This document shows, piece after piece, positions 5,081 through 64,000 of a stretch of 64,000 nt of DNA. The stretch covers positions 70,150,560-70,214,559 of the forward strand of contig NC_068990.1 in the NCBI RefSeq assembly GCF_001194135.2. Reading direction: 5' to 3'. Every line of letters starts with the position of its first letter. Within the stretch, counting starts at the first letter, position 1. Under the pieces are notes generated by a model, which ran no database searches, was not told where the DNA came from, and was given only the letters and a program-made list of their open reading frames with translations. The translations under genes were made by a program, and so were the position numbers. Source of the stretch: Octopus bimaculoides (taxonomy: Eukaryota).

Positions 5081-5180
5081 TTTATCTTGTAGCATTTAAA
5101 CTAGCCATGTTTGGCCCAAATTTTCTACTGGTTTTATGTTCAAACAGGTCTGATCCAACCTTTCACACCTACTCTACAAT

Positions 5181-7556: not shown

Positions 7557-7643
7557 AATGTTATGATGAAATGGGTGTCATTGTTGAGAAGCTGAAGATG
7601 GAATTATTTGAAATTATGATTCCTGCAACCACTGATAATAAAC
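7557..7643 (+). other. Candidate exon: alternative CTR2 last exon (adds TML-stop) or orphan 87-nt phase-1/1 coding exon
   Basis: Strong U-rich acceptor ttttatacttttattttttattccag| at 7556; weak donor AAC|GTATTA at 7644; higher GC than its flanks. No transcript evidence available. Confidence 0.3.
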
Positions 7644-7691
7644 GTATTAGTTTTTTATTGTGCGTGTGTGTATGTGTGTGTGTGTGTGTGT

Positions 7692-7729
<38 letters not shown>

Positions 7730-12939: not shown

Positions 12940-13007
<68 letters not shown>

Positions 13008-22548: not shown

Positions 22549-23569
22549 AGGGAAGTACATTGTATATATGTATGCATGGTACATATGTGCGTGCATGTGT
22601 GTGTGTGTGTCTGTATGTATGTAGGTGCAATTACAACATCCACACTTGTTACAAAAATACACATACACACACCCAGTTGTAGCATATCCACCTAGAACTT
22701 TGTTATTCCCTGAAGCTAGATTTTCACTGCAAAATAGGAAAGAAAAAGATTGAAAATTTATTCATCGGAAGTGAATAATTTCCATGAATGAATGAATGAT
22801 TCTAAGTCAACATTGTGCAATGGACAAGAAAGAAGCTGGCCACAGATACAGTCTATGTAGTCAGTCAGTGTAGGTTAGTCAACATTTTAGCTTAGATTAA
22901 GTGATTTACTGCTAACATTATTTAATTACAAAACATAACTTTGTGATTTTGTCAGTTGAAGCAGGTTTTACTAAATCAGATGGCTTTATCACTGAGCTGT
23001 GTGCATGGGCAAACTTTTTCAAGAAGCGGGCTGCACAACTAAAAGAACTCAAGATAATTTTCATTAAACGTGCCATTCAAAAAGTCCTGCAGGCTGCAGT
23101 TTGCCAAGGACTGTGTCAAAGGTTGTTTTTATCAAATAAAAATCTTATTACAGACACTCCAATCAGCAGCACTAAAAATCATCTTTCTAGGGAATACACA
23201 AAAGGTGTGTATTGTAAGTAGATTTGTTCCAATAACAATTGTCGTTCCAAGAACAAAAAAAAAAAACAATTTATATAAACACGCACACACGTGTGTATGT
23301 GTGTGGGGTTGTCAGATAAATTGATACTTTTTTTACATTCAAAATTCTTGGATCTTTTCTGTTTGGCTGCCACTTTTCAATTTCTGTTCCAATTGATTTT
23401 ATATTTAATGTAATGATGTAGTTTTGTATGCTAATCATTGACATGAAATTCATTTTCATCATAAATCAACAAATGAAGAGTTAATAGCTTTTAAAGTTTG
23501 CAAATTTTGTGTAATTTTAGCCAATCATAAGCAACAGACACATTCATACCCGTTTCCATAGTAACAAGC

Positions 23570-35636: not shown

Positions 35637-38600
35637 CTAGAACTCTAGTCTATAAGCTGAGCAACTTGTTTCGTGATCCTGTAACTGGATTGTGCAACGG
35701 CTGGCAGAAGGGGCCACATCAATCTTCAGATCAGTCAATTGGTCGCGATGTAAACCCATCCAATGTCTTAATGTTTCATTATCGTATGTTGGAATAACTG
35801 TAACTTCCAGCTCTTTGTCTTCCCAGGTTTGTTTGGCGTCCAGAAGAGCATTTAATATTTGAGGGTTTGGCGAGAGGGCACTTAGCACATAGTAACGGGC
35901 TCGAATCCTCTTGAAGAATTCAATATCACTTGATGTTGGATCACCATGGTTAGGAATATATGTCAAGTCTACATAGAAAGTAGTGTGAGGGGGTAAAGGA
36001 GGAGCAGGTTTCGAGGCTGGAGAAGTACGGCTCCCACTAGTGGTAGAAGTCGGACGTTTGGTTGCTGACAGTTTGGTCTTTGATTCCGTTTTTAAAACAC
36101 TGCTTGTAGTCTTGATCTCTTGTTTAACTGCTGTGGAAGATAAGGGACGTGATTTTGTCAAAGGTTTCTTCTCAGCAGTTGCTGAAGATGATCTTTTATC
36201 CAAGCTAGTAGCCGAAGTCTTTGGTTTACTCTTCAGATCTGCATCCCCATTGGCCAACCTCTTCTCAGGCTTGCTGCTTGTTGCAGTCTTTCGTTCTGTT
36301 AAAGGTTTAGATTTTCCTAAAGTTGTTGGTTTCTTAGTCTCAGTCTTTTTGTTGTCAGCTAACTTTTTATCAGTGGTCTTAGAATCTAATTTTGAGTGAG
36401 TTGTTCTAGATTTCATTGTTGTTGTTGAGCTCCTTGCAGCAGTTACACCATTTGGCTTTTTCGATTCAGGTGGTGGAGGGCTAGGGAGATTCATGGGCTT
36501 CCCCCATTCATCAGCAGGTTCAAATGGTTTAGCATCAGCATTAAAGCCTTCAAAATTAGCAGCTTGTCCTCCCATATAAGAAACATTCCCTTGTTGACCA
36601 AACGGATCAAAAGACTGTTGATTACTTGGAGAAAATGGTGGTGCAAGTGGTGACAAGTTGCTGGCATTGGTATTCCAGCCAGATGTGGCAGCTGATTGTT
36701 CAGACAACTGTTTAGATGAACCATAAGATTCATCAATATCTTTTTCGTCATCAGGTGTACCACCATCAATAGAGTCAGTATCATCTCTATCTTCAAATTC
36801 TTTTTCAGCAGTTAATCCATCTTCACTAGAGAACTCACCACTGTGAGATTGATGTACATCCACAGGTTGTCCCATTGTTTTGGCTTCTCCCTCACGTTGA
36901 GGAGTCTCATCCTTTTCAAAAGCTGCTGGTATTGAAGATACATGATCTTTAGCACCAGCCATGTGTTCTACTGCTGCTGCAACATGATCTTGTTGCTCTT
37001 CAAAGTGTTGGCCTTCAGGACTTCTTTCTTTTTCATCCCAGTCCATTGCCATTTCATTAGTTTCAGGTTGGGAAGCCACTTCAGAAGAATCTTCATCTTC
37101 CTCATCATCAATTTGGTCTTCATGTATTTGCTTGTCTGCTTCATCACACTGGTCAAGGGCTGTACCACTATCAGACTGATGCATACTACCTTTTGGACCA
37201 TGGTTTTCTTTGTCTTCATCTTTTTCGTGAAATTCCATTCGTGAGGCAGCACCAAAGTCTTGTTCAGCCTCATAACCCTCAGGACTGTAACGTTCAAGTT
37301 CCTCAGTCTCACGATGCATCTCTTCGTGATTACTCTCTGGACTGATTCGATCTGACAAATGGTCATCAGATGTGCTTTCTTGTTCCTCTTGACTGTCTGC
37401 CATGTCATGCTGTTCCCTGTGACCTAAGGCTTCCTCACTTGCATGTTCCCTTTCCGGGGACTCACTTCTGGCATGCTCATCTTCATACATTGGCGACTCA
37501 GCACTAGCATGTTGCCTTTCATATTCTGGAGATTCTGTGCCAGAGTGCTCTCTTTCATACTCTGGAGATTCTGTGTCAGAGTACTCCCTCTGGTTCTCTG
37601 GAGACTCTGTGCCTCTACGCTGATTTTCAAATGTTGAAGATTCAGTAGCTGTGCACTGACCTTCAAACGAGGGAGACTCAGTGCCAGCACGTTGACCTTC
37701 AAACGAGGGAGACTCAGTGCCAGCACGTTGACCTTCAAACGAGGGAGACTCAGTGCCAGCACGTTGACCNNNNNNNNNNNNNNNNNNNNNNNNNNNNNNN
37801 NNNNNNNNNNNNNNNNNNNNNNNNNNNNNNNNNNNNNNNNNNNNNNNNNNNNNNNNNNNNNNNNNNNNNNNNNNNNNNNNNNNNNNNNNNNNNNNNNNNN
37901 NNNNNNNNNNNNNNNNNNNNNNNNNNNNNNNNNNNNNNNNNNNNNNNNNNNNNNNNNNNNNNNNNNNNNNNNNNNNNNNNNNNNNNNNNNNNNNNNNNNN
38001 NNNNNNNNNNNNNNNNNNNNNNNNNNNNNNNNNNNNNNNNNNNNNNNNNNNNNNNNNNNNNNNNCTGACCTTCAAACGAGGGAGACTCAGTGCCAGCACG
38101 CTGACCTTCAAACGAGGGAGACTCAGTGCCAGCACGCTGACCTTCAAACGAGGGAGACTCAGTGCCAGCACGCTGACCTTCAAATGAGGGAGACTCAGTG
38201 CCAGCACGCTGACCTTCAAACGAGGGAGACTCAGTACCTTTGCACTGACCTTCAAATGAGGGAGACTCAGTACCTGAGCGCTGACCTTCAAATGAGGGAG
38301 ACTCAGTACCTGAGCGCTGACCTTCAAACGAGGGAGACTCAGAACCTTTGCACTGATCTTCAACTTCAGCATCTTGCTTTTTCTCATAATCTTGAGATTC
38401 TAGTCCAGCATCATGCTTCTGGTGTTCAGGAGAGTATCTCCCAGAAGCCTCACAACTAGGCTGATCAGATGGAAAGAGATCTTGCGGTTTCTCAGACAAC
38501 AATTCTTCACATTCCGGCATTAATTGGTTCTCTTTAATCTCAGAACAATCTTCTGAGATTGAGTCATCTTTTGTTTTTTCTTCTGAAATATCATCTTGGA

Positions 38601-40850
38601 GATTCTGCAAAACCTCAGCCTGTGATGGCAAGGCTGGCTCCATCAAACTACCATACATAGATGTTGACATACAAGAATCCATGGGCAATGGAGGAGAAAG
38701 TTCTCTCTCGGGACTAATTTCAACTGGAGCAGCTGTTTCTGAAGTAATCTCACTTTCAGGTAAAGTTTTAGGTTTTGAAAGAAGGTCTGCAGTTATGTCC
38801 CTTGACTCATTTCCAGAAAACCCAAGCCTTGAATCATTATATTGAATAGGCTGGCTCTCAAGAACCAAATCAGGTTCTGGTAGTGACTCTGGCTGAACTT
38901 CTTCCATTTCATCAAACCCTTTGTCTTCAGAACCAGAGGATACAATCTTATCAGCTTCAATTGCATCATCAGAACGTTGAGCATGACTCATCATGTCATC
39001 ATAAATACCCATATCCTCCATTTGTTTCATGTTTAATCTACTGCTAAGTTGGTCATCTTCAGGCTCAGCTGTAGCATCTCTTTCCACATGAGTTGGGTCT
39101 GGCAAAGGCTCAGGTGATTGGTTGTTCATGAGACAAGGTGATGTTGCATTCATTGATTGTTCAGATTCAGCTTTCATTGAAGGATGGCCAATCAGATCTA
39201 GTAGAGGATCTGAGGCAGGGCTGGATGTAGGAGCTGCTGCAGGTGTATTGCCAAAATCTACAAGTAGATTAGAATCTTTCTGGACTAGATCAGGAGGAGA
39301 TTTTTTGACAACAGGTGCAGCTGGTTCAGAAATAGCAGGAACACCATCCAAAGGAGACTGAGCTGAAGGAGCCACTTCAGTGGGAGGCGATATTTTAGGT
39401 GAGACACTATTGCTTGATTTTGGTTTATCACCCTTTTCTTTTGCTTTGCTAGTTTTTTTATTAGTGTCATCTTTCAATCCCTTGTTGGTAGTTTTGCTAA
39501 GCGATGTCCTTGATTTCACTTCAACCCTAGCTTCACGTTTGATTGGTTCGCTCTTGCTAGCCAATGGTTTTGAAGTAGTCCTAGTAGCTTTCAATGGTGC
39601 AGATTTTTTTACTGCAGTTTTTGGGGCATTCAGATCTTTATCACAGCACTTTGGAAACTTCAACACATTTAGGGTCTTCATTTTCTCAAGACCTTCAATG
39701 ATTTTATGTTGAGGAGCATTCCCAGGGAAAAATATGCGAGTAATTTTTTCTAATGGGTCAGCTGGCCGCCAGATTAAAAGTGCACATATGGACAACATGT
39801 TTGGGAGTGGACATTGAGAACCATTCACCTGAATTGATTGTTTACTCCATTGTTGATAAAATTCCTTTAATTCTTTGCTGTCTTGGACAGGATTCAAGAT
39901 GTACATATCCAGAGATCCATGGCCAACTTTATGATAAAGATTCACTGGATCAATCTGTGGAGAAGTTGCAGGTCGAGAACAAGAGTTAACAACTTGTCTT
40001 AATTGTCGCACATAGTCAGTAATTTTATCTCCTTCATTAGAAAGATTTATCAGTAAACTATCTGCTGATGGTTTTCCGTCCAATTCTGATTCATCTTGCG
40101 AGTTCCGGTTACCCTTTGGGGCATTGAAGTAAACATGGCCTATCTCTGGGTGCACATTTTCAATGCTCTTACGGTGTAAGACTGAATTAATGCCAAAAAG
40201 GTTATCAATACCCAAGTGTGTGAGCAAGAGTGCATCAATGCGGTCAAGATGACGAGTGAAATCCCAGAAACAAGCCTTTTTGTTGTAGCCACCATTTACT
40301 AATAGATTGAAACCACTAATTCCAAACAAGGCAGAGTCTCCTTGGCAACCAGGGAACACGTACAGGGTTGGTTTGCTGAATCTGATATTACCAACAACAT
40401 CAGAAGATCGAAGCATTTCTTTTAGAGACCTACATTTCACATAATTGCACAGGTAAGTGCTAAATTGCAAAACACCAGTCAAATCAGAAAGTTTATCCTC
40501 AGGGTTCAAATTAATTTGAAGAACTTTGCTTCCAATCTTTGAGAGGTTTGCATTGTTCCATTCTCCAGTTGCAAAACAATGAATATTTAATATACCTTCC
40601 TCTTGTTGTTTTAAAGCATTCTCAACATCAGGATCCTTCAATGTTGCAGCAAAATTGCCAAAGGAAAACGGGGCATCTTGCAAGATCCATTCTCCAGAGC
40701 CATGCAAGACATGACCTGCATATATTAAGTGATGGTACTTAACAGGTGCTCCAAGGAAGTTTTTCAAAGACCTCTTCACAGTAGTTGATTGAGGTGCTAT
40801 CAATGCTTCCACAGACAAAGTGACAGAACTATAACGCAGCACTCTTTCAC
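35637..40850 (-). CDS. futsch: MAP1A/1B/futsch-like microtubule-associated protein, giant terminal coding exon (most of heavy chain plus light chain); contains a 295-N gap
   Basis: Acceptor (T)n-GCAG| at 40851/40850. Conserved MAP1 N-terminal domain (GERVLRYSS, KPTLYVFPGCQGDSALFGISGFNLLVNGG, CFWDFTRHLDRIDALLLTHLG, NLYHKVGHGSLDMYIL). Conserved C-terminal light-chain domain (FYVDLTYIP, FFKRIRARYYVLS, VTVIPTYD, DVAPSASRCTIQLQDHETSCSAYRLEF-stop). The ORFs 37750..40842 and 35637..38387 join through the gap inside a 36-bp repeat. Confidence 0.92.
37440..38400 (-). repeat. Coding 36-bp tandem repeat encoding GTESPSFEGQRA-like 12-mers
   Basis: Unit ggcactgagtctccctcgtttgaaggtcaacgtgct is near-identical on both sides of gap 37770-38064 and degenerates outward (DTESPEYEREHS, SAESPMYEDEHA). 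Confidence 0.95.
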
Positions 40851-41487
40851 CTGCAAAAAAAAAAATGCAGTACAGGTAAGACAGAACAAAAGCAAGTTAC
40901 AAATTAAATCATAGCAAAAACTTAAAAACAATCAATATATTCAAGATTATGTATTTGACAAAATACAAAAGATGACTTACACCTTCCCAGTTTGTTCTCA
41001 ATGAAATATTTAGTTCAAATAAAATAGTTACTGCTTCAAAATAAGATGTTGAGACATCATTTTCATTCAAATATTAAAACAGAGGCTAAGTAAGAACCTC
41101 TTCAAGAAAATTCCACTTTCAAACTGTAAACCAAAGAGCTACTCCCTTCCACACAAATACTAAAAAGCTTATCACTGAAGTTACCATCTACAATGATACA
41201 ATAACCTATTTGTGAAAATGACAATTATCAAGATGTTGAGTTGGCAGAATTATCAGTACACTGGGCATAATACTTTGAGGCATTTTGCCTGCCTTTATGA
41301 TCGAGTTCAAATTCTGTCAAGTTGACTTTGCCTTTCATCCTTTCAGGGTTGATCAATTAAGTACCACTTGAGCGCTGAGGTTGATATAATCAACCTATCT
41401 GCTCCCAGGAAATTGCTGACCTTGTGCCAAAATTTGAAACCAAGATGTTGAGCTGGCAGAATCATAAGCACATTGGACAAAATGCTT

Positions 41488-41797
41488 TCTTTTATTCTTT
41501 CACTTGTTTCAGTCATTTGACTGTGGCCATGCTGGAGCATCACCTTTAGTTGAACCAGGACTTATTCTTTGTAAGCCTACTACTTATTCTGTTGGTCTCT
41601 TTTGCTGAACTGCTAATTTACGAGGACGTAAACACACCAACTTTGGTTGTCAGGCGATGGTGGGGGTACAATCACACACATATGATGGGCTTCTTTCAGT
41701 TTCTGTCTACCAAATCCACTCACAAGGCTTTGGTTGACCTGAGGCTACACTAGAAGACACTTGCCTAAGGTGCCATGCAGTAGGACTGAACCCGGAG
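41488..41797 (-). mobile_element. SINE family A copy nested inside a family B copy
   Basis: Aligns to 5181-5606. The B-family head (41448-41487) and remainder (41810-41950) flank it. Confidence 0.8.
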
Positions 41798-42815
41798 TGA
41801 TGATTCTTCTGATTTTACATTGAGATCCAATTCTGCCAAAGCCAACCTGGATTTTCAGCCTTTCAGGGTAAATGAAATAAAGTACATGTACTGAGGTTGA
41901 TGTAATTGACACCCCTCACTCAAAATTGCTGGCCTTAGGTTAAATTTAGAAATAATTCTTAATGTTGAACTGCCCAACCCATGCCAACATGGAAAACAGA
42001 CATTAAATGATGACTATAGAAAATTAATTTAATCAACATATTCTGCATTGTCAGAATATGGGTATATTAAAGGCAAAATTTCAACAAATTATGTTCATAT
42101 TCCAAAGAACAGTACTATAAAACCTATTGAATCATTATGAAAAAGTTGATTAATTTTGAAAAGTAGGATCACTGTTAGTTGTCTGAATGACTACCTATGT
42201 AGCTGCCTTAATACGGTCTACTTTCTACCAGGGCTCAACTGGACTATACTACAACTATAAACATTTTAACTCCTATAAGAGAGAAGTAATTGCTGATATG
42301 AAAAAATCATTTCAGAAAAATGACACCAAATAAGCAAAACAACTCACTTAGAATAATCATGACAATTTTAAAACAATGACAATGTTTAATAGAGAGAAAC
42401 AGTTATTTTAAAATATAAAAATTTGTAATATTGGTAGCTTGGAAATGAGTGTGATGGCAATAATGACAAGGATAAGATAAAATGACACTGATAAGATAGA
42501 GAAAAGCAAGCGAATAGAATGAAACAAGGAATACCTAGATGTTGATTTCTTGAGGTTTAAACTCATTTATTCTGAATCAATAGTGATTTGTTAATACTTT
42601 TTTTTCTTAATGGCATCGAGAGGAATAACAGCATCCAAAATTTTCGAGGCTGATGGCAGGAAGTTGTCCTCAAAGCGACCTATTCCAGATAGTTGCTATA
42701 CAATGTGCTCTCCTAAAGGTGATCAAAGGGCCAAGTGATAGTATGAAACGATGCTGAATTATGCCTGTGACCCCAAAACAGGAATGTTTCCTTTGATGGA
42801 GCTTCTACAGTTTCT

Positions 42816-43048
42816 TATTTCGTTATTGCCCACAAGGGGCTAAAGATAAAGGGGACAAACAAGGACAGACAAAGGGATTAAGTCGATTACATCCACCCCC
42901 AGTGTGTAACTGGTACTTAATTTATCGACCCCAAAAGGATGAAAGGCAAAGCTGACCTCGGTGGAATTTGAACTCAGAACGTAACGACATTGAAATACTG
43001 CTAAGCATTTCGCCCGGCAGGGTAACGTTTCTGCCAGCTCGCCGCCTT
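42816..43048 (-). mobile_element. Young full-length SINE family B copy (head aaggcggcgagctggcagaa)
   Basis: Retains many CpGs. Other copies: 6191-6392(+), 13148-13310(+), 16660-16875(-), 16905-17080(+), 31030-31225(-), 31500-31710(+), 41240-41445(+), 46360-46520(-), 48478-48690(+), 52258-52440(-), 52470-52665(-), 54445-54570(-). Confidence 0.9.
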
Positions 43049-46000
43049 AGCAGAAACTGTAGAAGCTACAGTTTCTGCTAAGCAAAAACTCTAGATTGGT
43101 TGAGTTGACATTATATAGCAACATATTTAACCAAAATCACATGGCTTGGGAGCTAAATTTTTAATTCCACAGTTATGTATGCCTATGGAAAGCTCGAAAA
43201 CAAAGTCAATACCAATGTGATTTGGAATCTAAACGCAGTACTGTAAGACTAATTCTCAGCTAATGTGCTTCACATAATCAAGAATGACTCCTTTATGGTA
43301 CTTTATAGGACTTAACCTTAAGTCCTTAAAATGAGGACCCTTTCTTTGAATCTAATTGATACATTAGCAATTTTCATAAAGAGAAATATTTTTTTACAGT
43401 TCAACTCACACCAAGATAAAAACTGTTTTAATCTCACTCAGAATGATGATCAAAATGAAATTCTACTCGATACATATACTCAATTGTCTCATTTTCGGTC
43501 AAGGGGGTCATTGAAACCTGGCACAGTCCTCTGGCTCATCAAGCTCCTGTCAAACCATCTTAGAATTATAGTTTATATGTAAATGAGATGAGTTAAGTCA
43601 GCTCAAACTGAGCTAGCCAATGTTACTTGATAATTTAGTTAACTCAAAATTTGTGATGCCACTTACTAGCTTTTATATTATTCTCTAATTAAGGCCTTTT
43701 AGCACACTTCTAATCTATTCTCATATATTACATCAATCATGAGCCAATTAACGTTCACTTTCAGAACTGCACAATACCAAGGTCGAACAAAGAAGTAAAA
43801 TTCCATGAGACTTTAAAATATAACTTCTTTGAATGATGACAATGATAGGGATGTAAAAACTGAATTACTGATAAATTGTTCAATAGCATGCAAATGTTCT
43901 AAACTCCTGAAGGTGAGAGCCTATCATTAGTAAAAAAAAAAAAAAAAAAAGGAGAGGGAGAGGATTAAAATAAGGAACCTTTCTTGGGTGACAAAGTTGG
44001 TAAGTACAGAAGTTGAATTACATTCATCATGACCAGCCAGGATCTCCCATTTTCCCCAGTTCAACTCTGCATTACATCTCTTTGTACAGTTAGATTTTAG
44101 TATTAGAAAAATCTGTTCTTTCAGCATTCTTATGTTGTTTTGATGACAAGTATATTGTTGTAAATTTAATTGATTCCCTTTTCAGTATTTCGGGGAATAT
44201 GGTGAAGTCTATGATTGACTGAGGATGATCAGAATCATCTCCAACTTGCTGAAAATGAATCAAAACAATGATTCCTTTTCCTGCTGTATAAGTCTTTTTG
44301 ACTTTTGATGCTCTCTGAAATAATAGGTTGGCATTTGTTTTATCATGCAAGATGGTGCCTGCTTGAACATTTCCCCTGGTACTTTATTATTGTCTTAGAA
44401 TTAAATTTTGTAGGTAAACACGGTTCTTTCTCCATGCCAACTACCACCATGATCATTTATTGTCTGTATGCTGGAATGGTCTGGATAATTTGATAGGAGC
44501 TTGCAAGCCAGAGGACTGCAAACTCCAAAGTCTTTTGCAAACCAGGTACTTTTCATGTAGCACTGGCATTAGCAAGATCACCAAGTAACTTCCAAGTAGC
44601 TTTATGCCAGGTGACGAGAGGTTAAAATACAATAAAACAGTGACAGGTGTGTAAAATTTAAAATACGAACAACCAAACATGATTCTTCCATCTAACCCTA
44701 GTTGTTGATGCACTGACAATTCTTACATGAACACAGTTTAGAGAAATCTGTAGCTGATGAAAAACAAAAAATTTTAATTGAAAACCCACATGTCAAAGTC
44801 CAGGTTTAGGATCTACACAGATTTCCACAAAAATCAGGTTTATTCACATAATTACATTTTTTGTTTGTTTTTTTTTCTCCTAAATCTGATGCGAATTTCT
44901 ATGGCAACCATTTGAAAGATGCACAACATAAACACAAAACGCACCAGACTAATAGATACATGACTGTAGAAATTTGTGGCTATTTTTGTTTTTAAAAGAG
45001 GACAAATAATAGGGTACAACGGAAGCAAAATCAAATTTGAAAGCAGTAATTGTGAACTTTTGAGGAAATGAAAAAACTGAGTTCATTCAATTACAAAAAG
45101 ATCTGATTTACAACAGAGGAATAAACTTAAAAGAATTTTTCTTTTAAAATAGAATAAGAATCAATTAAGAAATAAGAAAAGGGGAATGTTCCAGAATATG
45201 AGACTTTATCCATTGTCTTCACCATACAACAAACTGAATTTCAGGATACATTATTACATGAATATCTCATTTTTGACACAATGTGGCACCTTTAAAAATG
45301 TTGATACATTTCAAACAAGGAATTTTAGGCTTTTTGATACTGGCTTTGATTAGTTCACTATGGTTATAGGTGCAGGCATGGCTATTTGATTGAGATAGTT
45401 GCTTCCAAACCATGTAGTTTCAGGTACAGTCCCACTATGTGATCTTAGTATCTACAATAGCCCCTAAGGCCAACCAAAGCCGAGAGTGGATTTGGTTGAT
45501 AAAAACTGAAAGAGGCTTGTGTCTCCTTAACTCCACATCATGTAATGGTTGAAAAAGAGTTGTCATTGTCATTCATTTCCACAAAAAACATGTGTGGTGA
45601 TGGAGGGTGACAGGAAGGGTATCCGGCCATAAAAAAATCTAGCTCAAACTCCATCTGGTTCACACAAGCAAAGAAAAGTGGAAGTTATAAAATTCACACT
45701 ATTTTATACTTGATTTTTAACTGAAAAACCTGGGGGTTTACTGATACACTAGTAAATATAGTGTGTGTACACACAATGTTTTGGAAAAGTTTTCAAGAAT
45801 ACGTCCATTCACTGTTACTGAGATAACTGAAAATGTGTACACATTGAGCTATCTGGTCACAATATATTTTTGCCAGTAACTAAGAGTGTTTAAATATAAA
45901 GCAACCAAGATGATGTCGCGGTACCAAAGTGGCTAATACAATTGTTAATGCTTAGTACTTTTGTCAACCAGAATGGTTTCTCTCAATATAGATTTAAATT

Positions 46001-46548
46001 TTTATATTACTGATTCTTGTATGGATCAAATCTCTTCACCTCTCCTGTAACAATATGGTAGTTCTTATAATATATTTGTATCTGATGGGGGAGCAAGAAC
46101 TCCTTCCTCCATTTACTGTGAACAGAGAGCATTAGTTCCCTGAATTCATTTTCAAATTCCTATTCAATTGAATCTTATTTTAGTCTCTACTAATCAATAT
46201 TCAACTCCATTTTCTGCAGGTCGATGCCTGTAAGGATTAACGGAATTAAAAGGAAGTAGTGTTGAGGAGAGAAGATTACCAGATTTTGGTAATGAGACAA
46301 TAAGAAAGACTAAAAAGGATTGTAAGATGCTTGCTAGTTTGGAGGTGCAGCATCGTTAGTGGCAAATTGATTTCCAACAATGGTACAAGGTCACCAAACT
46401 GGGGTGGGTATAATAAACTTACCCCAGTACTTCACCAGTACTATATTTTTTTCAACCCTAAAGAAATGAAAAGTAACGAGGACTTCAGCAGTATTTGAAC
46501 TCAGAAGGCAGGTGGCTAGAACTAAATTACTTTTGTTTCACAATTTAA

Positions 46549-46755
46549 CCCTTTTGATACTAACCAAAGACCACAAGATTCCATAATACAAACTTCCCGT
46601 TTTAAAGTGATTTAAATTAAAATCTTTCATTACAATTTCATGTTAATTAGTGTTCCAAACATCAGTTCAATAATGAGGTTATTCAACCAAATTCTTCATT
46701 ACTCTCAATTGACTTAAACAAAGGCAGCAGTGTATTTCAGAAATATAACAAAGGG
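46549..46755. mobile_element. TTAA-flanked MITE with CCCTTT termini (piggyBac-like non-autonomous element)
   Basis: TTAA|CCCTTT...AAAGGG|TTAA. The internal sequence is shared in reverse orientation with 4857-5080 and 9080-9289. Confidence 0.7.
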
Positions 46756-46829
46756 TTAATAGTTTCAGTGTTGTATGCAAACTCCTGAAATGAGTACGAG
46801 GACTGTATGAAGTGTACAAAGGAATAGCA

Positions 46830-47330
46830 TCTTTTAAACGCTTTCCAGAAGGTTTGTGTATAGAAGATGTTACCTCCCACCATCACTTGGACCATTACTC
46901 CAATATGTGGTACATTTGTGCTTTGTAAAGGGCCAGCAGATGTTTTGAGCAGAATTTGTTTGTGGGCTTAAAAAGAAAGACCCAGTCTTTCAGAAGCCGT
47001 CATAGCATTGTTATCAAATATATGATCAACATGAAAGATATGCATTTGTAGCAACCTCAAGAAAAGGTAGGCTGTTTTTTAGAGATGGTTTTCTTGATGT
47101 ATATCGTGACGTAATGCAAGTGTATGGATTGTATGGATGAAACCTATATATGAAAGGCCGAGGAGCAAAGGATACCTCTACCACAATGAAATTAATAGCT
47201 AGTATATAGTAGATGAAGCATGCGAGGGACATGACTGAGCTGAGGAATATAAGAGTTAATGGAATGTGGATGAAGAGGAAACTTCCACAAAGAAAAGGAG
47301 ACAGTTGTCCAAGGGCTACTTTTCTAGTAG
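46830..47330 (-). mobile_element. Highly decayed CR1/L2-type LINE RT remnant, possibly extending to ~48000
   Basis: Minus strand reads LLALYKAQMYHILE (compare LLTLYKAQIRPxLEY) and SSVMSLACFIYYI (compare QGSVLSPTLFLLYI). Confidence 0.5.
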
Positions 47331-49170
47331 ATTCTTGTACTATGCAGAAAATAGGTTTCTTGATATAAAATGAAAACCACAACACAGTTTTTTTTCTGAA
47401 GTAGTTAATGAAAAATCACAAATGTGATTGCTAATAAAAAAATTACCCAATACATTTGCTCAACAACAATGATGATAAAGGAGGTATCATTTATGAGCAT
47501 ATATCACTGAAATACAGCATTTGTGGGCAGTTGGTGGGCAAGAGTGATAGCAGTAGATGAGATATATAGCTAGAGAAATGATAAATGAAGTGTTTATCCA
47601 AGAAAGGAATGCAGTAAGATTGGTTACCCAAATAGACACATGGTTAGAGGCGTTAACACAGAAACTGTGTGCAAGATTGCCCAGCAGGTAGGGCCTTGAG
47701 AAAAGTGAATATAAGAGGAATTTTCATGTGTTTATCGCGCAAAGTGAAAATGGAGGCAAAGCGGGCAGCAACTGTGATGGAATTACTGACAGAAGCATAT
47801 ATAATTAGGAGTTTGAGAAATGGTAAACAGAATTAGGTAAAGGTCGTAGAAAACAAGAAAGCCTAGCTGTAGTTTGGGGAGGGAGAGAGAGAAAGGTTTG
47901 AAATGAGGATGAGTAATACATGATATTTTTTGGTTTTTCTAGTCATATAACAAGACATTATGGTGACTGAATACTCCACCTTGTTGGAAGCAGAATCAAT
48001 GTTCTTCGACTGTATAGCAGCAGCACACTTTCTCTTTCAGTATTAATGTCTTGGAGGTAACTGAACTTAGCTAAATTCTAGCAAGTCCTCAGCTATCCAC
48101 AGTCATTGGCCATATCACTTCATGTATTAAGTTACTATGTGATTATGCATGCACATGTTAAATATGTTTCTGAAAACTTTCTCTAGATTCCTAAACTACT
48201 AACACTATGAAGGGAGATGGGTGTGAGGAAGGAACATTGGATGAATTTTCTCCAGATTGCAATTATTTCCCCTCTTTAATGAAATGCCTCATTTCATTAA
48301 ATGAATAAGCCACAAGTCATGTCATGCTGATAATTTTGAAAAAGAATGAAATAATGACATATGATTACCACCAACTAGAAATTTTAAGAACTTTGTAATT
48401 AAAAAAAAAGTGAATTCTATGCAACTTTTCTCTTAAATCCCTTAATTTGAAATTCAAATTTCTAATCCCTGTTAGGGTAGTGAGCTGGCAGAATTGTAAG
48501 CACACTGGATAAAATGCTTAGCAGTATTTCTTTTGGCTTTACATACTGAGTTCAAATACTGCTGATGTCAACTTTACTGTTCATTCTTTTGCAGTTGATA
48601 AAATAAGTACCAGTTGAGTACTGAAATTGATGTAATTGACTTTCCCACCCCTCTCAGGCTCTGGTGCTTATAGTAGAAAGAATTATTAGCAGCAATGTAT
48701 CATTAGTAAAAACTGGGTCTTTCTAGCCACTTAAATCACATTTCTGGTTATAATATTAATCCACTTTAGTGCTTCTTTAGCTAATAGGTCTTGCAGATTG
48801 AGAAGTTTTATTTTGCTGCCAGAATAAAAAGACACTGTCAGTGAGAAGTATCAATGATTTCAAGTAACCAATGATAAAGTCTAAGACAGACAGACCCTTT
48901 ATGTCTTAAATCCAAAGAAGGAATGAACTAAAATTAAAAGTAAATTTCAACAGCCTTGTGTTTGTTTGTATGTCAGTATGCAAGTATCAGCTGGTTTCTG
49001 ATGTCTTGCAATGCTGACAGGTATTGGTGGGAAGAGAAAGAGTCAAAGACAGATCTAAATCAACTATGGAATATGGGAGAGAAAAGTGACACATTTAACA
49101 GAGGGGTGAAAAGATGAATTAAGACCTACTGGCAGCATGCAAAATACAGTAAGTATCTGACTAAGCTTAC

Positions 49171-49197
49171 CTGCATTGGGGGGTCCAAAAGAGTTGA
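49171..49197 (-). CDS. futsch: Probable 27-nt in-frame microexon of the MAP1/futsch gene (V-NSFGPPNA-G)
   Basis: Minus strand reads tttttttgttttccttccttaacag|TCAACTCTTTTGGACCCCCCAATGCAG|gtaagc. Strong acceptor and donor, phase 1/1 matching the flanking exons, no stop codon. TGCATG lies 30 nt downstream. Confidence 0.65.
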
Positions 49198-50891
49198 CTG
49201 TTAAGGAAGGAAAACAAAAAAAATATTCTACTTGTTTTTCTTAGAGCATAGTTGGATTACATTTTGAAAATAGCAACCAATCTTGAGAAAGGTACCATGT
49301 CAGCAAGAGTTTACATGTCAATAAGGGTTTAGATAAGCATTTTAGTATTAAATTGAGTAGTTGAGAAAGATGCTCAAAAATTGTTAAACTCCAAGTAAGT
49401 TTCATTATATTTAGGTAATTCTCTGCAAAGCATTTTAACATTAAACTGAGTAGTTTTATGAAGACAGTCAAACATCAGTAAACTTGAAATTAATTCCATT
49501 ATATTAAGATAATTCTCTGAGCTAAATTGTCTTCATTGGAATCTATGCCTAAAAGATGGATAAATTATCAGTAAATCTATTAGAATGGCACCAACAACAC
49601 ATTTCAATTACTTAGTGTGTTATGGTTCTGACTATCTACTATGTAATTTCTTTTACATTTTAAGTCTTTTTTAAATTATCATAATAGAGTTGAAGAGCTT
49701 GCAAATCTGAATATTTGTACAAATAGTCTTAGAGAAAGAAACAAAGAAAAGAAAAAAGGGGGAATTTTATTACATTCATTTTTCTTCATATTTTACAGCA
49801 ATATGCTCATTCCACTGACAATTATTCAGGAATAGAAATGGAGTTAGTTCTACCATTCAGTCAGGTGAATCTGTAGTAGGCAGAATTAGGTACCTTGCTC
49901 AAAATGGTCCAAAATAACAGCCAAGATTCAAATTTATACCTGGTCAATCACCCAGTAACTTTACCTCATAGCCATCATGCCTCAAATATGTGTGTGTGCG
50001 TGTAAATTTCAAAAGTTGGAAAAGGCTGTAGGATTCAGCAAATTTAAATAGAACAAGCTTGTTCTGAGATTGGAAGGAATCGTATTTGTATGCATTTAGT
50101 CTTGCTGTAAAATTAAACAATGGTAAGATATTGATTGCGTGTGAGCTTGGAACAAGACTAAATACATACTGATGACTAGCCAATGCTATCTTGGTTACTC
50201 TAGTAATTCTAAAGACAGGTAACCAGTTTTATATATAAGTATATATACCCTTGTGTAAAACATATACACCACACCTTTATACACTTAATATTGTGGTGTT
50301 GATGCCAACCAATCTGCGATCACCTCTGGTCCTACCATACAAAACTAATTCTATAAGATATTTTAACGAAAATCTCCAGTCATAGCTTCATTAAATTTAA
50401 ACTGTTTTTGAAATATAACTTGACAAGTGACTTAAATACAGCTATTTTACTAATTCCTTATAAAATTTTGATTATTTTCAAAGTTAATCGAAGAACACAA
50501 CCAATGCATTCCATTAGAAATTTAGTAAGGAAAGTTTTAGCACCAAGCTAAGTTTAAATCAAGTTTAAAAAGATGTAAAAAGCAAATAACAGAATGCTTT
50601 TGAATAAGAAATTTTCATTAAAAATTAAAAGAAAAACCAATGAGAAAGGCTATCAAACTGATTAGTTTTGATATAAAAACGTCTAGTTTTTAAATGCTAT
50701 TGAATTAAAACAAGAGTGCAGTGAGAAAGACCAACTTGCTTTTAGTAATATAAAAGTTAGTATATCTCAAAATGAGTTGACAACAGTTAATTGTGATTTC
50801 CATTAAATTCTATTGTAAACAGATCAAAAACTAGCAACAAGAAAATAATTCATCCTTCATGAAGCCAAAGAATAAAATTCTTGATACTAAC

Positions 50892-50990
50892 CATAAGGAC
50901 CTTCTTCACCCAAAGCACCTTTGTTGGCAATCTGAGAGACTTCCTCGTTTATGTCTACTCCAGCGGCTTCCACATCCCAAGTGCGAAATC
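50892..50990 (-). CDS. futsch: MAP1/futsch 99-nt internal exon (G-FRTWDVEAAGVDINEEVSQIANKGALGEEGPY-G)
   Basis: Acceptor ctgtttccag|GA and donor G|GTTAGT, phase 1/1. Homologous to the MAP1/futsch N-terminal GxxSWD...EGEE segment and joins in frame to GERVLRY. Confidence 0.9.
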
Positions 50991-51710: not shown

Positions 51711-52006
51711 CTTCAGTCATGACTGGCCATGCTGGGATACCACCGGGCAGTGTTTAAAAGGAACAAAACTTCAATACTTATTCTAGTGGTCTCTTTTGCC
51801 AAATCATTAAGTTATGGGGATGTAAACAAACATCAATTGTTGAGCAGTGATGGGGGACAAACATGGTTTTCATATACCAAATTCACTCACAAAACAGTTA
51901 CCCTGGGGCTATAATAGAAATTTGCCCAAGGTGCCATGCAGTAGAACTGAACCCAAAATCACATGGTTGCAAAATGAGCTTCTTAAGCACACAGCCATGC
52001 TTGTGC
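51711..52006 (-). mobile_element. SINE family A copy
   Basis: Reverse complement aligns with 5181-5606. Confidence 0.8.
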
Positions 52007-54272
52007 AATACATTTCTATAGTCTGTTCACATTGCCATTGTGATTCATATTATTATTATTATACAAAAATAAAGACATACACAAAAGGCTAGAAGTGTTT
52101 AATCCTGTTCATGAGTCAACTTCTCATAAACCAGAAAATATGTGGGACATGAAAATCATGAAACATTCACCTTTATACTTATTCAATTACCACTCCCAAA
52201 ATCTGGGCAGGTATTTACAGCTATAGCTGTACTAGTCAGAAAGTAAGAAATACCATATAAAATATTGGTTTCAAATTTTTGGCACAAGGACAGCAATTTT
52301 GAAGAAGACTAGTTGATTACAAAAAACCCAGTGCTTGAATATGCTTTGACTATGAAAGGATGAATGGTGAAGTTGACTGCTAGGATTTGAACTCAGTGGC
52401 ATCTCTTCCAGCTCTTTTCTTCTAAGTATTTCGTTCCATGTGTTAATGATTATGCTTGTGCATTGCCCTTAATAATGGTTCTAAGTTTTTGCAGGCCAGA
52501 AAACTTACGGGGGTAGGGAGGTCATTATATTGACTCCAGTCTTCAACTGGTATTTTGACCCCAAAAGGATAAAAAAGTGAAGTAGCATTTTAACTCAGAA
52601 TGGAAGAAATACTGCAAAGCATTTTTGTCTGATGTGTTAATGATTCTATCAGCTTGCTACCTTAATAATAATAGTAATAATCTTATTGTACACACTGCTC
52701 AGGTGCTGAGAAGTTGCTTGAGTGAATGACAATTTGTATCAAGGTTTCAATGAAAAATTGAAGTTAACAGGAAATGTTGAAAGGTTTTAATTTAGAACAC
52801 TTTAAACAAAATTTATGTAGAGCCAATGGTCAGTATCAAAAAAAGAGACTTACACTGAACTTAAAGTTGTTTGGTAGTAACACAATTCTCATTAAACTAA
52901 ATGAATTTGGTTTTTCAAGGATAGTGCCAAAGCAGTTAAAGTGTTACTTTTGTACATTAAATTGGGATTAAAACAAAGTAGAACAAATGCAAACAGCAAA
53001 AAACTTCCTTGAAACCAACATGATTTAAATGTAACTTTCTGCCAGTTTACACCAAAATTCAAATGAGACTGCTATTAGCAAACTTCATACAAAACCCTCA
53101 AAGTTTGATCACTGGAGGACCATGCTACACCAAACATAACTGCAGACCCTTCTATTCTTAAATAAATCACAGTTGCCAGTTTAAGTATGAGAGTACTTGT
53201 GGAAACATGTCCAGATGAAAGCAGTGTCTGGAACTGCTTCAAAACAAGCTTTCATGTATTGAGGGTGTTTTTGTTATCTGCTTCTGGGAATAAACAGGAA
53301 CAAAGCTGTGCAATTAAATAAAGAAATTGATGCCAAGACCTTTTCACATAGAGTTGCAGGAAGGATTTTGCCAAAGAGCAGACTTGAAAAGCTACAGATT
53401 TTAACCCAAGTATTCACATGACTGGTATAATATAATTAGTATATTCTCTTCCTCTCCACCAGAGAGGGAACATGAAATGTTTGTTTTACTTGGAGAAAAC
53501 AATTTACAGAAAGTAATCTTTGCAGTTGTGACCTCCTATTCCTAATCAATGATTTTTCTTCTTTAAATTACGTTTTAATTACAACTACATGACATTATTA
53601 AGAAAATATTACCAATATTATTGAAAAAGAGATGAAATTGAAAATATAAAATAACCAAAGCAAATTTAAAAGGGTCTACATAAAAGTTAAATTTGTGTGC
53701 ATGTTGATTTAAAATATTTTTATCTCTATCAATAATACACCCAACATTTACATTGCAGAGCATTAGTTAATTTGAATAATTAGATAGGAACAGCAGGTAT
53801 GCTGTTACATAGATGTTTGAGTAAACCTTTAAAATATAAATACTTCCCTAATCTTATCACTCCTTGAAAACCATATTTTCTTACCAGATTCCTTTGACAG
53901 AATTCATAAAGAAAAGTTATGACTTGGCAAAATGCCAATGAATTTAAATAAGGAATTTTGAAGTTGGTCCAGGTGTTAAAGACTGATAAAGCTATACTGG
54001 TATTTGGAGAATCAAAGGAAATCTACTCATTCAAGAATCTTTGTTCCAAATCCACCCAAAATTCCAGACAAGAATTTTTAATGGCTTTTAGATAAGAGGA
54101 AAAAAATGTTCCCTTTAGTTAAGGGAGCTACATCACAAAACTCCCTTAGTAAAACATACTGCAGTTTGCCTCTCTTGAACAAGATAGATTAAAAACAGGA
54201 ATGTCAGGAAGGGGTGGATTGATAGCTCAGATGGGTGTTAGTTTTCTTCCTTCTGCCTTTTTTCATCAGATA

Positions 54273-54273
<1 letters not shown>

Positions 54274-54368
<95 letters not shown>
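54274..54368. repeat. (TG)n microsatellite, representative of many di/tri/tetranucleotide arrays
   Basis: Others include (TG)n 12944-13004, (CA)n 58386-58477, (CATA)n 7075-7205, (TATG)n 7990-8095 and (GAT)n 2412-2442 and 17207-17312. Confidence 0.95.
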
Positions 54369-54371
<3 letters not shown>

Positions 54372-55759
54372 CACTTAAAACTAACAAATAAGTTTACATT
54401 AATACAAACGCCATCAATCAAACAATACAATTTTTTAAAAATGCTTTCTAATTTAGGCACAAGGCCAGCAATTTTGAGGATAAGGAGCAAGTGAATATAT
54501 TCTATTTTCAATCCCAGAATGATGGAAAGTGAAATTAACTTCAATGGGATTTGAGTTCTGAATGTAAAGCACCATATCTTCTTACTCTAAAATCAATTTA
54601 GGGTAAGTCCACAGGGTACAACTAAATTATTGCACCTGTAGATGGGATACTTGTCATACCTAAACTAAGGAATAATCTCCCCTACTTTTCTTAACCAGAA
54701 TTGACCATTAAGCCATTCTTTTTCCTCTTCACAAGATTACAGATGCAATTCTAACATCTTGGCACGAACCTGAGGACAAAGCACTGAATGCAGTTTTAAT
54801 TTTAATTAAGGCTATTATTTGCTCCAATAATAGACCTATTGAAGGTCATACTGTAGCCTTGTCCTCATAGGTCCCCTTTTGCTGAATTAGCTGATATAAC
54901 AATGAGGTACCTCCTAAGTCAGCAAATCTTTTTGAACCTTTAAATGCTGGACTGTTACAGATATATTTAGCATTGTTTTTTAACACCCATTTTCTAAGCT
55001 TGCACAGGTTCAACAGAATTCTTTGAAACAAATTTTCTCAGGCCAGACGCCCTTCCTGTCACCAACTCACTTCTTTCCAAGTAAGGTAATATCTTCCCAT
55101 GGCTAGACGTTACCACAGAAAACTGGAAACCAACAACACCATGCATGATGGTGATTGTTTACAATTTTCATTTGAAAACAAGGAAACAGTGACACAAACA
55201 CGCATGCAAACACAAATATAAACTACCGGCTTTTTTAAAGTTTCTATCAAAGTCACTCACAGGGATTTGGAGCTATAGTAGAAAACATTTGTCCATGATG
55301 CTATGCAGGAGAGTAAATCTGAAACCATGTGGTTGAGAAACAAACTTCTCAACCCGACAGCCATACCTGTACCCATATATTTTAGATTGAGGTAAAAGTA
55401 TAATTTTTGTTTTCTGTAATATGATAGAGCAGGGAGATTTTTTTCTCGAAAGTTTACTATGCATCACTCCAATTAGTCACTCTAAACCTGTTAGAAATAA
55501 GTGAAATTTCCCTCAAATTTTACACGGACTTCAAACAAGTCACATTTGATAATTGAGGCCCAGACAGACTGTTTTAAATTAAGATGTGATGGCCACACCA
55601 CTAGAAGAACCCTTTGATCAAATGTCAGCTCGATTAGGAGTAAGTTGGTGTAAGACTAAAGTCATTACCAAAGTAGAGTTACTCAAAACAGAATTCAGTT
55701 ATATTTTCAGAGACAAATTATTTTAGAATGGAAAACTTTAGCAATAAAACATTTGAAGA

Positions 55760-58130: not shown

Positions 58131-58400
58131 AGAGAGAGGACATGGTGAAGAAAGTAAAATAAAGTGTAGAAACTATATTGGATCTGCCATGACTTATGAA
58201 TCTTGGTCAGAACCCAATCTCTCCACAACTAACTACAACACTAAGAACCCAAACAGTGCAATAAACAAGATTTATATAGACCGCAATCTTTAAAAGACAT
58301 TGAAAAGGTGCAATTTCTTGCTACCGCAAGTCTCACTACTTACAGTCCCTGTTATTACATGAAAAATCCACTTCCAAACACCAAGTCACACACACACACA

Positions 58401-58479
<79 letters not shown>

Positions 58480-58858
58480 CACCCTAGACTTAGTACTACA
58501 ATGACATTCTAAAACTACTATCTCTGCTATCCAGCTTCAACATTCATAAACGAAAAATATACATAGATACAAAAACAGTTGCAACATCAATAACCTCACT
58601 GGTCTTGAACATTGTCCAAACATGTGACACCATCAGAATCTTTGGGAATGTAATATGGCTGGACAGTAGTGTGTAAATATGTCCAGATTGTCAGAGTCAA
58701 AATATGGTCTATAGACATGACCAGAGTGATTGTATGGCTACAAGACTGCAGGATCAGGGTTTATCTGGGGTTGCATAATTTTTAAAACAGCCAAAGGAAC
58801 TAGTTTATAACAGTCAACATTTGGTTCATCCACCTTTACAGATTACATCATATGAAGG

Positions 58859-62000: not shown

Positions 62001-64000
62001 CCTAATGAAAGAAAATTTCTTTTCATAAATGTACACAAACTTCAGAAGCAAGATATTGAAAGAATGTTCCTAACATTGTTTTACTTTCCATAATAACAGC
62101 ACTTAGGCAACAATCAATTTAACAGCTGAAGTCTGTTATTTAACTAGCCACTAACTTACTGTGTGTGGGTGTGTGTATTTACAGTTTGGCTGCGTAAATA
62201 CATATATTTAGCTTTAAATATATGGCTACAAAAACCTTCAGTTTATATTAAGCCATTCATACTTTGTAGGAACTTGTCAAATGACTAGAGAAAGGATATG
62301 ATCAGAGTTAACAAAGAAGAATGAACTTAGGTTTTTGTTAACTTCAGATATTAGAGAGTGAGCATCCAATAACTTGTTTCCCTTGAATGATGGCAGCAAG
62401 GTTGAGAGAGAAATGTTTAAAGTGTTGTAGGTATATTTATGATAGGCTCTCATTTGTAATACAGTAAGTTAATAAACTTTGATCATCTATGTAATTAGAT
62501 ACACACACAACCCCACCACCACCACGAAAAAAATCTATCCACAACCAAAGAAAATAACTAAGATTAATTGATCTGAGTATAATATGAAAGGAACATGATT
62601 TATAGATCAAAAAGTTGATTGGCATGGAATTTACAAACATAAAAAATGTTCGTATTTTAAAATTGGCTATAAAGGTACACTAAAACAGTCACACACAAAT
62701 ACAAGGAAAATGCAGTATAATAATTCACACACTTTCAAGTGATTGAGCAGGTTTTGCTTTCAAATTCAACTGTTTTACTGCTTATTTTGCTAAAAATTCC
62801 CAGCATATGGGAATCATCTTAAAACTTAATCAGCACCTCAGCTTTACAGCCTAGGTTTCATTTCTCAGGCATACAAAGAAACAAATTATTGAACAATAAT
62901 TGAGAATGTTTAAAAGATATTTCAAAAAATATCTTTTTCAAACTACAATGAATTGTATTTCTCACACTATCCATAGGTGATATTAAACTCACTGCACGTG
63001 TCACAAGGTCCCATAACAGTCTTCTGCTTTGAAAGAATTCATATAACTTTATACAAATTTAATATTATTTCATCTGTATTTGCATATGCGTTTCATCAAC
63101 TTCTATTCTTTAGAAGAAATATATATTAATTTGGAGTTTCTATTAAGGATAGATTATTATTTGTTTTTACTTTTGTTTTTCTGTCCTTTTTACAAAGCTT
63201 TGCCAGTTTCCTCAATCTTTATTTTCTGTCTTCAAAGGCACAAAGCTAGCGATCTGTTAAGAGAAATATCACTTGTATCTTACAATTTTCGTAGTAGCAC
63301 AAAAATGTAAACAAACATACATTTGTCTTCATCCACTTTTCATCTAGCAAATCAATTCATAAGGCTTTGGTCAGTCTGGAGCTATAGCAGACACTTGCCC
63401 AAAGTACTGTGCAGCAGAACTGAATCCGAAACTACATTGTTGCAGAGAAGCAAACTTCTTATCCACATAGCTACTCCTGTACTTCAGGCTGTGGTCAGTC
63501 TCGAGTCATAGAAAACAACTGCTCAAGATGTTGTACAAGGAGACTGAACCTGATACCATGTAGTTGGGAAGTGAACTTAACCACACAGCCATTCCTGGTT
63601 AAGTAATTCCATAATATAATCATGATCAGAAACTAGTCTTGTATGATAACCACCAAATACATGCTAAGAATATTGAGAAAACAAGGTTCACGTATGCAAT
63701 GTATGTTCAAAATATGTTAGATCCCTAACTCAATTACAATCTATAACAATAATTTGCAATAAATTTTAGATCATGTATGACCAGGTATGGTATATTTACA
63801 CTATGCCATGTAAATTTTAACCCTACAGTAGTAAACATACTCTTGGTTGAAAATCATGGTTTCAGCTAATCCACTACATAAAACTACACCCCAAATTGCA
63901 ACATGTGGAGCAGCCAGCTACCCCCCCCCCCCAAAAAAAAACATGCATTAGTGATTTATATAGTCAAATTTCAATAAACCATTGCTTCAGTTACAAGTAG

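Follow-up and report, generated by a model that had tools for sequence, protein, structure and literature searches.

The DNA analysed here is a stretch of 64,000 nucleotides (nt) from Octopus bimaculoides (contig NC_068990.1 of assembly GCF_001194135.2, positions 70,150,560 to 70,214,559 of the forward strand), referred to below as the window and numbered from its first letter. Its minus strand carries coding exons of a gene of the MAP1/futsch type, and a 27-nt segment at 49197-49171, lying between two of these exons, is almost certainly a real coding exon, as judged from its splice sites and its conservation. Taken together, the observations are best explained, with good probability, by a microexon of an octopod MAP1/futsch-like gene that is orthologous to a 15-36-nt cassette microexon of other molluscs.

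Architecture of the microexon

Across the site the minus strand reads ...gaatattttttttgttttccttccttaacag/TCAACTCTTTTGGACCCCCCAATGCAG/gtaagcttagtcagatacttactgtattttgcatgctgcc..., where the slashes mark the exon borders. The upstream exon ends at 50892 with ...GGT CCT TAT G/gttagt, that is, in phase 1, and the downstream exon starts at 40850 with /GT GAA AGA GTG CTG CGT TAT. An earlier note, made from the letters of this DNA, had described a 27-nt body with a strong acceptor, a GTAAGC donor and phase 1/1, all of which are found at this place on the minus strand. The spliced reading agrees with the insertion of VNSFGPPNA that it had deduced, being GEEGPY-VNSFGPPNA-GERVLRY with the microexon and GEEGPY-GERVLRY when the microexon is skipped, and the TGCATG that it had placed 30 nt into the downstream intron is read directly there. 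The coordinates of these features are collected in Table 1, together with scores from the position weight matrices (PWMs) described in the next section. The acceptor, with its nearest upstream AG at -30 and no UGC closer than -51, scores the same as that of the constitutive upstream exon; the two neighbouring exons have acceptors of 10.4 and 14.2 bits.

Table 1. Features of the MAP1/futsch-like gene in the window, in order along the minus strand
Feature	Position	Strand	Remarks
Upstream coding exon, 99 nt	50892-50990	-	phase 1 to phase 1; (G)FRTWDVEAAGVDINEEVSQIANKGALGEEGPY plus first base of the split codon
Intron 5' of the microexon, 1,694 nt	49198-50891	-	aligns with Argonauta over the last ~40 nt only
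Octopod conservation island (microexon and ~40 nt of each flank)	49133-49239	-	sole colinear match between the flanking exons
3' splice-site region	49198-49225	-	pyrimidine tract ttttttttgttttccttccttaacag + AG; acceptor PWM 10.4 bits
Microexon, 27 nt	49171-49197	-	TCAACTCTTTTGGACCCCCCAATGCAG; phase 1/1; adds VNSFGPPNA; no stop codon
5' splice site	49160-49170	-	gtaagcttagt after exon end CAG (CAG/gtaagc); PWM 12.1 bits including CAG
Intron 3' of the microexon, 8,320 nt	40851-49170	-
TGCATG, RBFOX-type (U)GCAUG element	49136-49141	-	downstream intron position +30
Giant last coding exon	35637-40850	-	remaining MAPB1_N, MBL-like domain, projection domain, C-terminal light-chain homology

A tandem duplication of 92 nt (49335-49425 and 49428-49519, 76% identity) is found 140-320 nt upstream of the microexon and falls outside the block conserved in Argonauta. 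A repeat origin of the microexon region was considered and rejected, its matches within the window being, besides itself, a 21-nt T-rich match and this nearby duplication.

Splice-site quality compared with chance

Splice sites were scored with home-made PWMs built from a generic metazoan consensus and untrained on cephalopods. Counting both strands of the window, 44 of the 7,615 AG sites score at least as high as the microexon acceptor, and 4 of the 7,037 GT sites at least as high as its donor. The microexon is the sole AG..GT pair in these 128 kb, at a spacing of 3-51 nt, that matches both of its own scores. The intron, which totals 10,041 nt, contains 1,538 AG..GT pairs at this spacing, and 338-339 of them are frame-preserving and free of stop codons, so that an open in-frame pair means nothing alone. 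The microexon ranks first among the 338 frame-preserving open candidates, with a summed score of 22.4 bits against 15.0 for the runner-up, and the number of in-frame, stop-free pairs of equal quality expected by chance in a 10-kb intron is about 0.0005-0.001, with the two sites taken as independent. As a positive control, the same PWMs put the annotated orthologous microexon at the top in five of six other mollusc loci; the exception is Pecten, where the annotated microexon is 9th of 790 candidates.

These counts bear on the possibility of a chance pseudo-exon, in which an AG and a GT stand by accident at a distance of 27 nt, with an open frame between them, in a 10-kb intron, and the segment never enters an mRNA. 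The hundreds of frame-preserving, stop-free candidates of 3-51 nt do make open in-frame pairs common, but pairs with splice sites of such quality are expected only about 0.001 times. Moreover, the segment is an island of conservation, with synonymous substitutions only, in an otherwise unalignable intron, an annotated Argonauta protein holds the identical peptide, and orthologous exons are annotated across Mollusca, as described in the following sections. We regard the pseudo-exon as extremely improbable and as already effectively refuted. A reading of the sequence alone can find a true microexon in a 10-kb intron, and a simple test for splice-site outliers is enough to tell it apart from in-frame decoys numbering in the hundreds.

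Conservation in Argonauta

A word-indexed protein search returned only matches shorter than 500 amino acids (aa), none of them from a cephalopod, the best being from Lottia at 59%. An exhaustive search of cluster representatives found full-length mollusc proteins and an Argonauta hians protein of 1,699 aa (GAB1603005.1, P0121 in our set), which is named 'microtubule-associated protein futsch-like isoform X1'. This protein aligns without gaps and with 96% identity to the 287-aa query, reads GEEGPYVNSFGPPNAGERVLRY (in a longer stretch, ...GALGEEGPYVNSFGPPNAGERVLRYSS...) and contains VNSFGPPNA, identical to the peptide encoded in the window. It follows from this identity that a public gene model from a second octopod genus already contains the exact microexon peptide.

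In the genomic DNA, a blastn comparison of window positions 52000-40000 with the Argonauta locus (L001) gives three colinear blocks only, namely both flanking exons and the microexon island, and the remaining intron does not align. The identities are 82% for the upstream exon (L001 45635-45755; 86% by tblastn with residues 35-70 of the Argonauta protein), 83% over 112 nt for 49239-49133, and 86% for the giant exon. Within the microexon, 25 of 27 nt are identical to the Argonauta genome, and the two differences, CCC>CCT and AAT>AAC, are both at synonymous third positions. The two genera share the acceptor cttccttaacag and, over the initial 11 bases of the intron, the donor gtaagcttagt without any change. 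Flank identity is 22/25 at -1 to -25 and 18/25 at +26 to +50, dropping to ~40-50% beyond. The 11-nt block tattttgcatg is perfectly conserved, and a 5-nt indel shifts the TGCATG to +35 in Argonauta. Such a pattern is characteristic of a coding exon that is functional and has regulatory flanks under constraint. The earlier note had proposed a check of conservation in related species; run on the octopod Argonauta, it finds the exon, the splice sites and the TGCATG all conserved.

Host gene and structural context of the insert

The protein encoded in the window matches the Pfam families MAPB1_N (PF23415, E 1.9e-32) and MBL_MAP1B (PF25281, E 3.7e-88). With MAPB1_N followed by an MBL-like domain, a long projection domain and a region of C-terminal light-chain homology, the host gene is, by its domain order, a member of the MAP1A/MAP1B/futsch family. 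Three coding parts of the gene are located within the window: the 99-nt exon, the microexon and the giant last exon, to which (40854-35640) residues 79-1699 of the Argonauta protein align by tblastn. The projection domain in the giant exon carries a (G)TESPSFEGQR repeat array, and the protein ends in ...AYRLEF, followed by the stop codon. The first coding exon was not found within the window; intron 1 of the Argonauta gene measures 35 kb. An assembly gap at 37770-38064 breaks the giant exon inside the decapeptide array and, because the reading frame differs across it, the size of the gap is arbitrary. The Argonauta protein has ~12 of these repeats.

The insert is positioned inside MAPB1_N. An AlphaFold2 model was obtained for the N-terminal 449 residues encoded in the window, insert included, with a mean predicted local distance difference test (pLDDT) score of 64, that is, at moderate confidence. 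In it, residues 28-42 (EEGPYVNSFGPPNAG), which comprise the insert, have a pLDDT below 50 and are found between a helix (14-24) and a strand (45-50), and an invariant G-E-R motif stands directly after the insert. The insert is therefore predicted to be a loop extension, since it belongs to a low-pLDDT segment between a helix and a strand and G-E-R follows immediately. What had been suggested earlier, a loop inserted into the N-terminal domain of MAP1, thus corresponds to a predicted loop of low confidence within the Pfam domain. Because exon 1 is outside the window, the model starts after the first ~37 residues of the domain.

Orthologous microexons in other molluscs

The other full-length homologues, at ~55-66% identity, are mollusc proteins, and their 90% clusters hold pairs of isoforms. 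In seven mollusc species the annotated isoforms of a pair are identical once an insert of 5-12 residues at the junction is removed (Table 2). A contig of the Logan RNA assembly (SRR23477409) reads VSPYGHQLKE at the orthologous site, in one uninterrupted open reading frame of 1,762 codons. The exons were located in the genomic DNA of six species (Argonauta, Haliotis rufescens, Liolophura, Pecten, Pomacea and Physella), and they have in common a phase-1 intron between GEEGPx and GER, phase 1/1, AG/GT borders, a size of 15-36 nt and donors of the gtaag- or gtaat- type.

Table 2. Inserts at the orthologous junction and GCATG downstream of the microexon
Species	Insert	Protein records	Downstream GCATG
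Octopus bimaculoides (window)	VNSFGPPNA		+30 (TGCATG)
Argonauta	VNSFGPPNA	GAB1603005.1	+35 (TGCATG)
Liolophura sinensis (chiton)	APHYGILKG	RefSeq X1/X2 pair	none within 300 nt
Haliotis rufescens (abalone)	ADDAGKVKG	RefSeq X1/X2 pair	+49 and +60 (Haliotis)
Haliotis cracherodii (abalone)	ADDAGKVKG	RefSeq X1/X2 pair
Pomacea canaliculata (snail)	DTSGGKNG	RefSeq X1/X2 pair	+179 (TGCATG) and +236
Physella acuta (snail)	ASCKP	RefSeq X1/X2 pair	+118 and +163 (TGCATG)
Pecten maximus (scallop)	VIVTGPDQSETF, split codon D to N	RefSeq X1/X2 pair	+53
Sinanodonta woodiana (freshwater unionid mussel)	VSPYGAPLKD	GenBank pair

The codon of the first insert residue takes its first base, G, from the upstream exon, which limits this residue to V, A, D, E or G. 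Seven of the eight distinct peptides have glycine as the fifth residue of the insert, and the fourth residue is aromatic in octopods, the chiton, the unionid mussel and the Logan transcript, four lineages in all. Compared with homology, a series of six or more independent gains is by far the less parsimonious account, and the octopus exon very probably belongs to a homologous, pan-molluscan microexon. It resembles the alternative microexon of other mollusc MAP1/futsch-like genes in the gene family, the phase-1 intron at GEEGPx/GER, the 1/1 phase, the small size, the AG/GT borders and the strong donors of gtaag(t/c) type, and its peptide is identical to that of Argonauta. It is unlike them in its peptide, which is largely different outside octopods, and in its length, 27 nt here versus 15, 24, 30 or 36 nt in some lineages.

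The existence of annotated pairs also bears on how visible such an exon is. The earlier note had expected that annotation pipelines would likely miss it; this expectation is contradicted by the Argonauta hians model, which already holds the identical peptide, and by the pairs with and without the insert in Liolophura, two Haliotis, Pomacea, Physella, Pecten and Sinanodonta.

The 13-residue junction of skip length was seen in 72 of the homologues fetched, and the insert-bearing proteins are from molluscs only. Arthropod-like homologues read GEEARG/GERLIQ, the length of the octopus skip form, and the gene models of a nemertean (Tubulanus), an annelid (Owenia) and a priapulid (Priapulus) are also of skip length. 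In Tubulanus polymorphus an equivalent phase-1 intron (GEEGSG/GERIV, 1,380 nt; L008 8592-9969) holds no credible microexon candidate, so that either the position of the intron predates the microexon or the exon has been lost. No sign of a pre-mollusc origin was seen in the Tubulanus, Owenia, Priapulus and arthropod models, which are single gene models and cannot exclude it.

The gastropod Gigantopelta aegis has one annotated isoform, of skip length, and an orthologous intron of 11.4 kb. This intron contains an in-frame 12-nt candidate, CTACCAAGGATG (ATKD; L009 77701-77712), with a gtaagtca donor and a score of 18.3 bits versus 12.8 for the next one, which could be an orthologous microexon absent from the annotation.

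Inclusion and skipping in octopods

Both isoforms are annotated in the seven other mollusc species, and the octopod record shows the inclusion form only. By analogy with these relatives, the exon is probably spliced alternatively in this octopod as well. If it were instead constitutive in octopods, it would always be included, the skipped mRNA would not be made and there would be no tissue regulation. Such a constitutive exon would agree with the acceptor and donor scores of 10.4 and 12.1 bits, which equal or exceed those of the neighbouring constitutive sites, with the inclusion form of Argonauta as the sole octopod protein on record, and with a peptide fully conserved between two octopod genera. 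It is at odds with the cassette nature of the orthologue in the seven species, with the conservation of ~40 nt of intron on each side, UGCAUG included, and with the Argonauta name 'isoform X1', which implies several isoforms in the reference used for naming. Conserved intron flanks are typical of regulated rather than constitutive exons. We consider constitutive inclusion unlikely and optional inclusion the preferred reading.

The downstream GCAUG and candidate regulators

In vertebrates, Drosophila and C. elegans, RBFOX promotes the inclusion of an exon by binding to a (U)GCAUG in the intron downstream of it. The motif TGCATG occurs 73 times on both strands of the window, ~1 per 1,750 nt per strand, and the probability of finding one within 50 nt is ~0.03; a lone TGCATG near an exon is weak evidence by itself and suggestive only. 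The motif is commoner than in shuffled sequence (73 observed versus 50 expected), partly because of microsatellites. Long microsatellites of the (CA)n/(TG)n type and ones related to it are common in the window (e.g. 2394-2700, 7600-8400, 12880-13070, 54240-54390 and 58340-58540).

The orthologous exons were examined for the same motif (Table 2) with a Poisson-binomial test in which octopods were counted once and the background was the GCATG density of each locus. A downstream GCAUG is present within 300 nt in five of six independent lineages (P ~0.007) and within 100 nt in three of six (P ~0.016), and upstream GCAUG is not enriched (three of six lineages, P ~0.2). The enrichment amounts to moderate support, because the limits of 100 and 300 nt were chosen after seeing the data. 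The octopus exon is similar to RBFOX-activated cassette exons in having UGCAUG 30 nt past the 5' splice site, kept in a second genus, and in that GCAUG is enriched downstream and not upstream of its orthologues. It differs from them in that the motif is present as one copy and the chiton orthologue has none. Inclusion of the microexon may depend on RBFOX, with a chance just short of even.

A further group of candidate regulators is provided by the eMIC proteins (SRRM3/4), whose cis code (PMC8797185) comprises UCUC-rich tracts, a long AG exclusion zone and a 3' splice site that is weak and has a UGC nearby. An architecture of this type was looked for in the window and rejected, the nearest UGC being at -51, the nearest AG at -30 and the acceptor strong at 10.4 bits. 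Upstream of the 3' splice site of the orthologues, UGC is found at -14 in Argonauta, at -21 and -16 in Haliotis, at -15 in Pomacea and at -21 in Physella. The window exon is like the neural microexons that depend on eMIC (SRRM3/4, Srrm234; PMC8797185) in being no longer than 27 nt, in preserving the frame, in its conserved flanking intron and in adding a surface-loop insert to a neuronal cytoskeletal protein; it is unlike them in lacking a UGC near the 3' splice site, in its strong acceptor and in its short AG exclusion zone.

The exon might thus be a regulated microexon under the control of SRRM3/4-type eMIC or other factors, the TGCATG having been kept merely as part of a constrained flank. 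Its size of 27 nt falls in the microexon class, for which cytoskeletal genes are typical targets, a UGC is found near the 3' splice site in four genera, and no GCAUG comes within 300 nt of the chiton exon. However, the window does not have the eMIC cis code of PMC8797185, a UGC within ~25 nt of the 3' splice site in four of seven species is about the level of chance, and the enrichment of GCAUG is specific to the downstream side. The RBFOX and eMIC modes, moreover, are not mutually exclusive. Regulation by factors other than RBFOX is rated rather unlikely, and less probable than the RBFOX-dependent inclusion proposed above.

Several points weigh against the interpretation of the exon as an optional, RBFOX-responsive loop insertion. 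The PWMs were composed from the vertebrate consensus, with none trained on cephalopods. Inclusion and skipping in the window species are both deduced from relatives, the octopod protein on record is the inclusion form, and both splice sites are very strong, which also fits constitutive inclusion. The structural model is of moderate confidence (mean pLDDT 64) and is built without the first ~37 residues of the domain and the exon-1 strand. Regarding RBFOX, there is a single copy of TGCATG, and its conservation is no independent evidence because it lies within a generally conserved flank; the distances of 100 and 300 nt in the GCAUG test were chosen post hoc, and the chiton lacks a GCAUG at up to 300 nt from the exon.

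Proposed mechanism and significance

The phase-1 intron that houses the exon is at a position common to other protostomes, and the position, phase and small size of the exon appear to have been kept while the peptide drifted, from VNSFGPPNA in octopods to VSPYGAPLKD, APHYGILKG, ADDAGKVKG, DTSGGKNG, VIVTGPDQSETF and ASCKP in other molluscs. The exon is too short for exon definition, and its recognition may rely on the near-consensus sites that flank it (a long U/C tract with CAG on one side and CAG/GUAAGC on the other). Inclusion would add nine residues to a flexible loop of MAPB1_N, just before the G-E-R that opens the next strand, and skipping would restore the loop length of arthropod, annelid, nemertean and priapulid homologues. 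In octopods inclusion would be optional and regulated, as in other molluscs, with the conserved UGCAUG 30-35 nt downstream acting as a putative intronic splicing enhancer that depends on RBFOX and would raise inclusion in tissues expressing RBFOX, such as neurons and muscle. The longer loop might tune a protein-protein contact of the N-terminus of the MAP1 heavy chain.

In its widest form, and only tentatively, since we hold it to be somewhat less probable than not, this would mean that the octopod exon descends from an alternative microexon which the last common ancestor of living molluscs (chitons and conchiferans) already possessed, its position, phase, size, optional use and downstream GCAUG having been kept for half a billion years with an almost free peptide. 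If this is true, selection would act on the length of the loop and on the switching of the MAP1/futsch N-terminal domain by RBFOX, and not on the peptide sequence, and the exon would join the few regulated microexons of such deep conservation that are documented in Lophotrochozoa.

The exon is real and old and of an ordinary kind, belonging to a well-known class and already in public annotation; its existence is not news, because public gene models already carry it as an ordinary alternative microexon. No paper describing it was found in the literature on microexons in octopus, futsch or MAP1B. What appears mildly new, from the comparison of sequences, is that an optional microexon has been kept at one intron in all sampled mollusc classes while its peptide diverged. 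This comparative picture, an optional exon of 15-36 nt from chiton to octopus with GCAUG enriched downstream, is of modest interest for the evolution of splicing beyond vertebrates and insects, and the two isoforms of different loop length offer a handle on the function of the MAP1/futsch N-terminal domain.

Other features of the window

A gene of the rhodopsin family of G-protein-coupled receptors (Pfam 7tm_1, E 4.5e-39) is found at 489-1499 and 3919-4290 on the plus strand, the second segment being a probable second exon with an NPWIY motif and a Ser/Arg-rich tail. The 3' end of the MAP1 gene, which is encoded on the other strand, is ~31 kb away. Between the two genes, at 21575-22630 on the minus strand, two adjacent open stretches match reverse transcriptase (Pfam RVT_1, E 4e-11 and 5e-8) and represent the remnant of an intergenic retroelement. 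Finally, a repeat of ~200 nt resembling a short interspersed element occurs on both strands (231-455, 5029-5319, 12555-12890, 51844-52089, 55260-55463 and 63311-63508). It was recognised by its recurring translation, ...LASQPHGSGFSPTVW.LGQVSS..., and one of its copies is found within the intron that precedes the 99-nt MAP1 exon.

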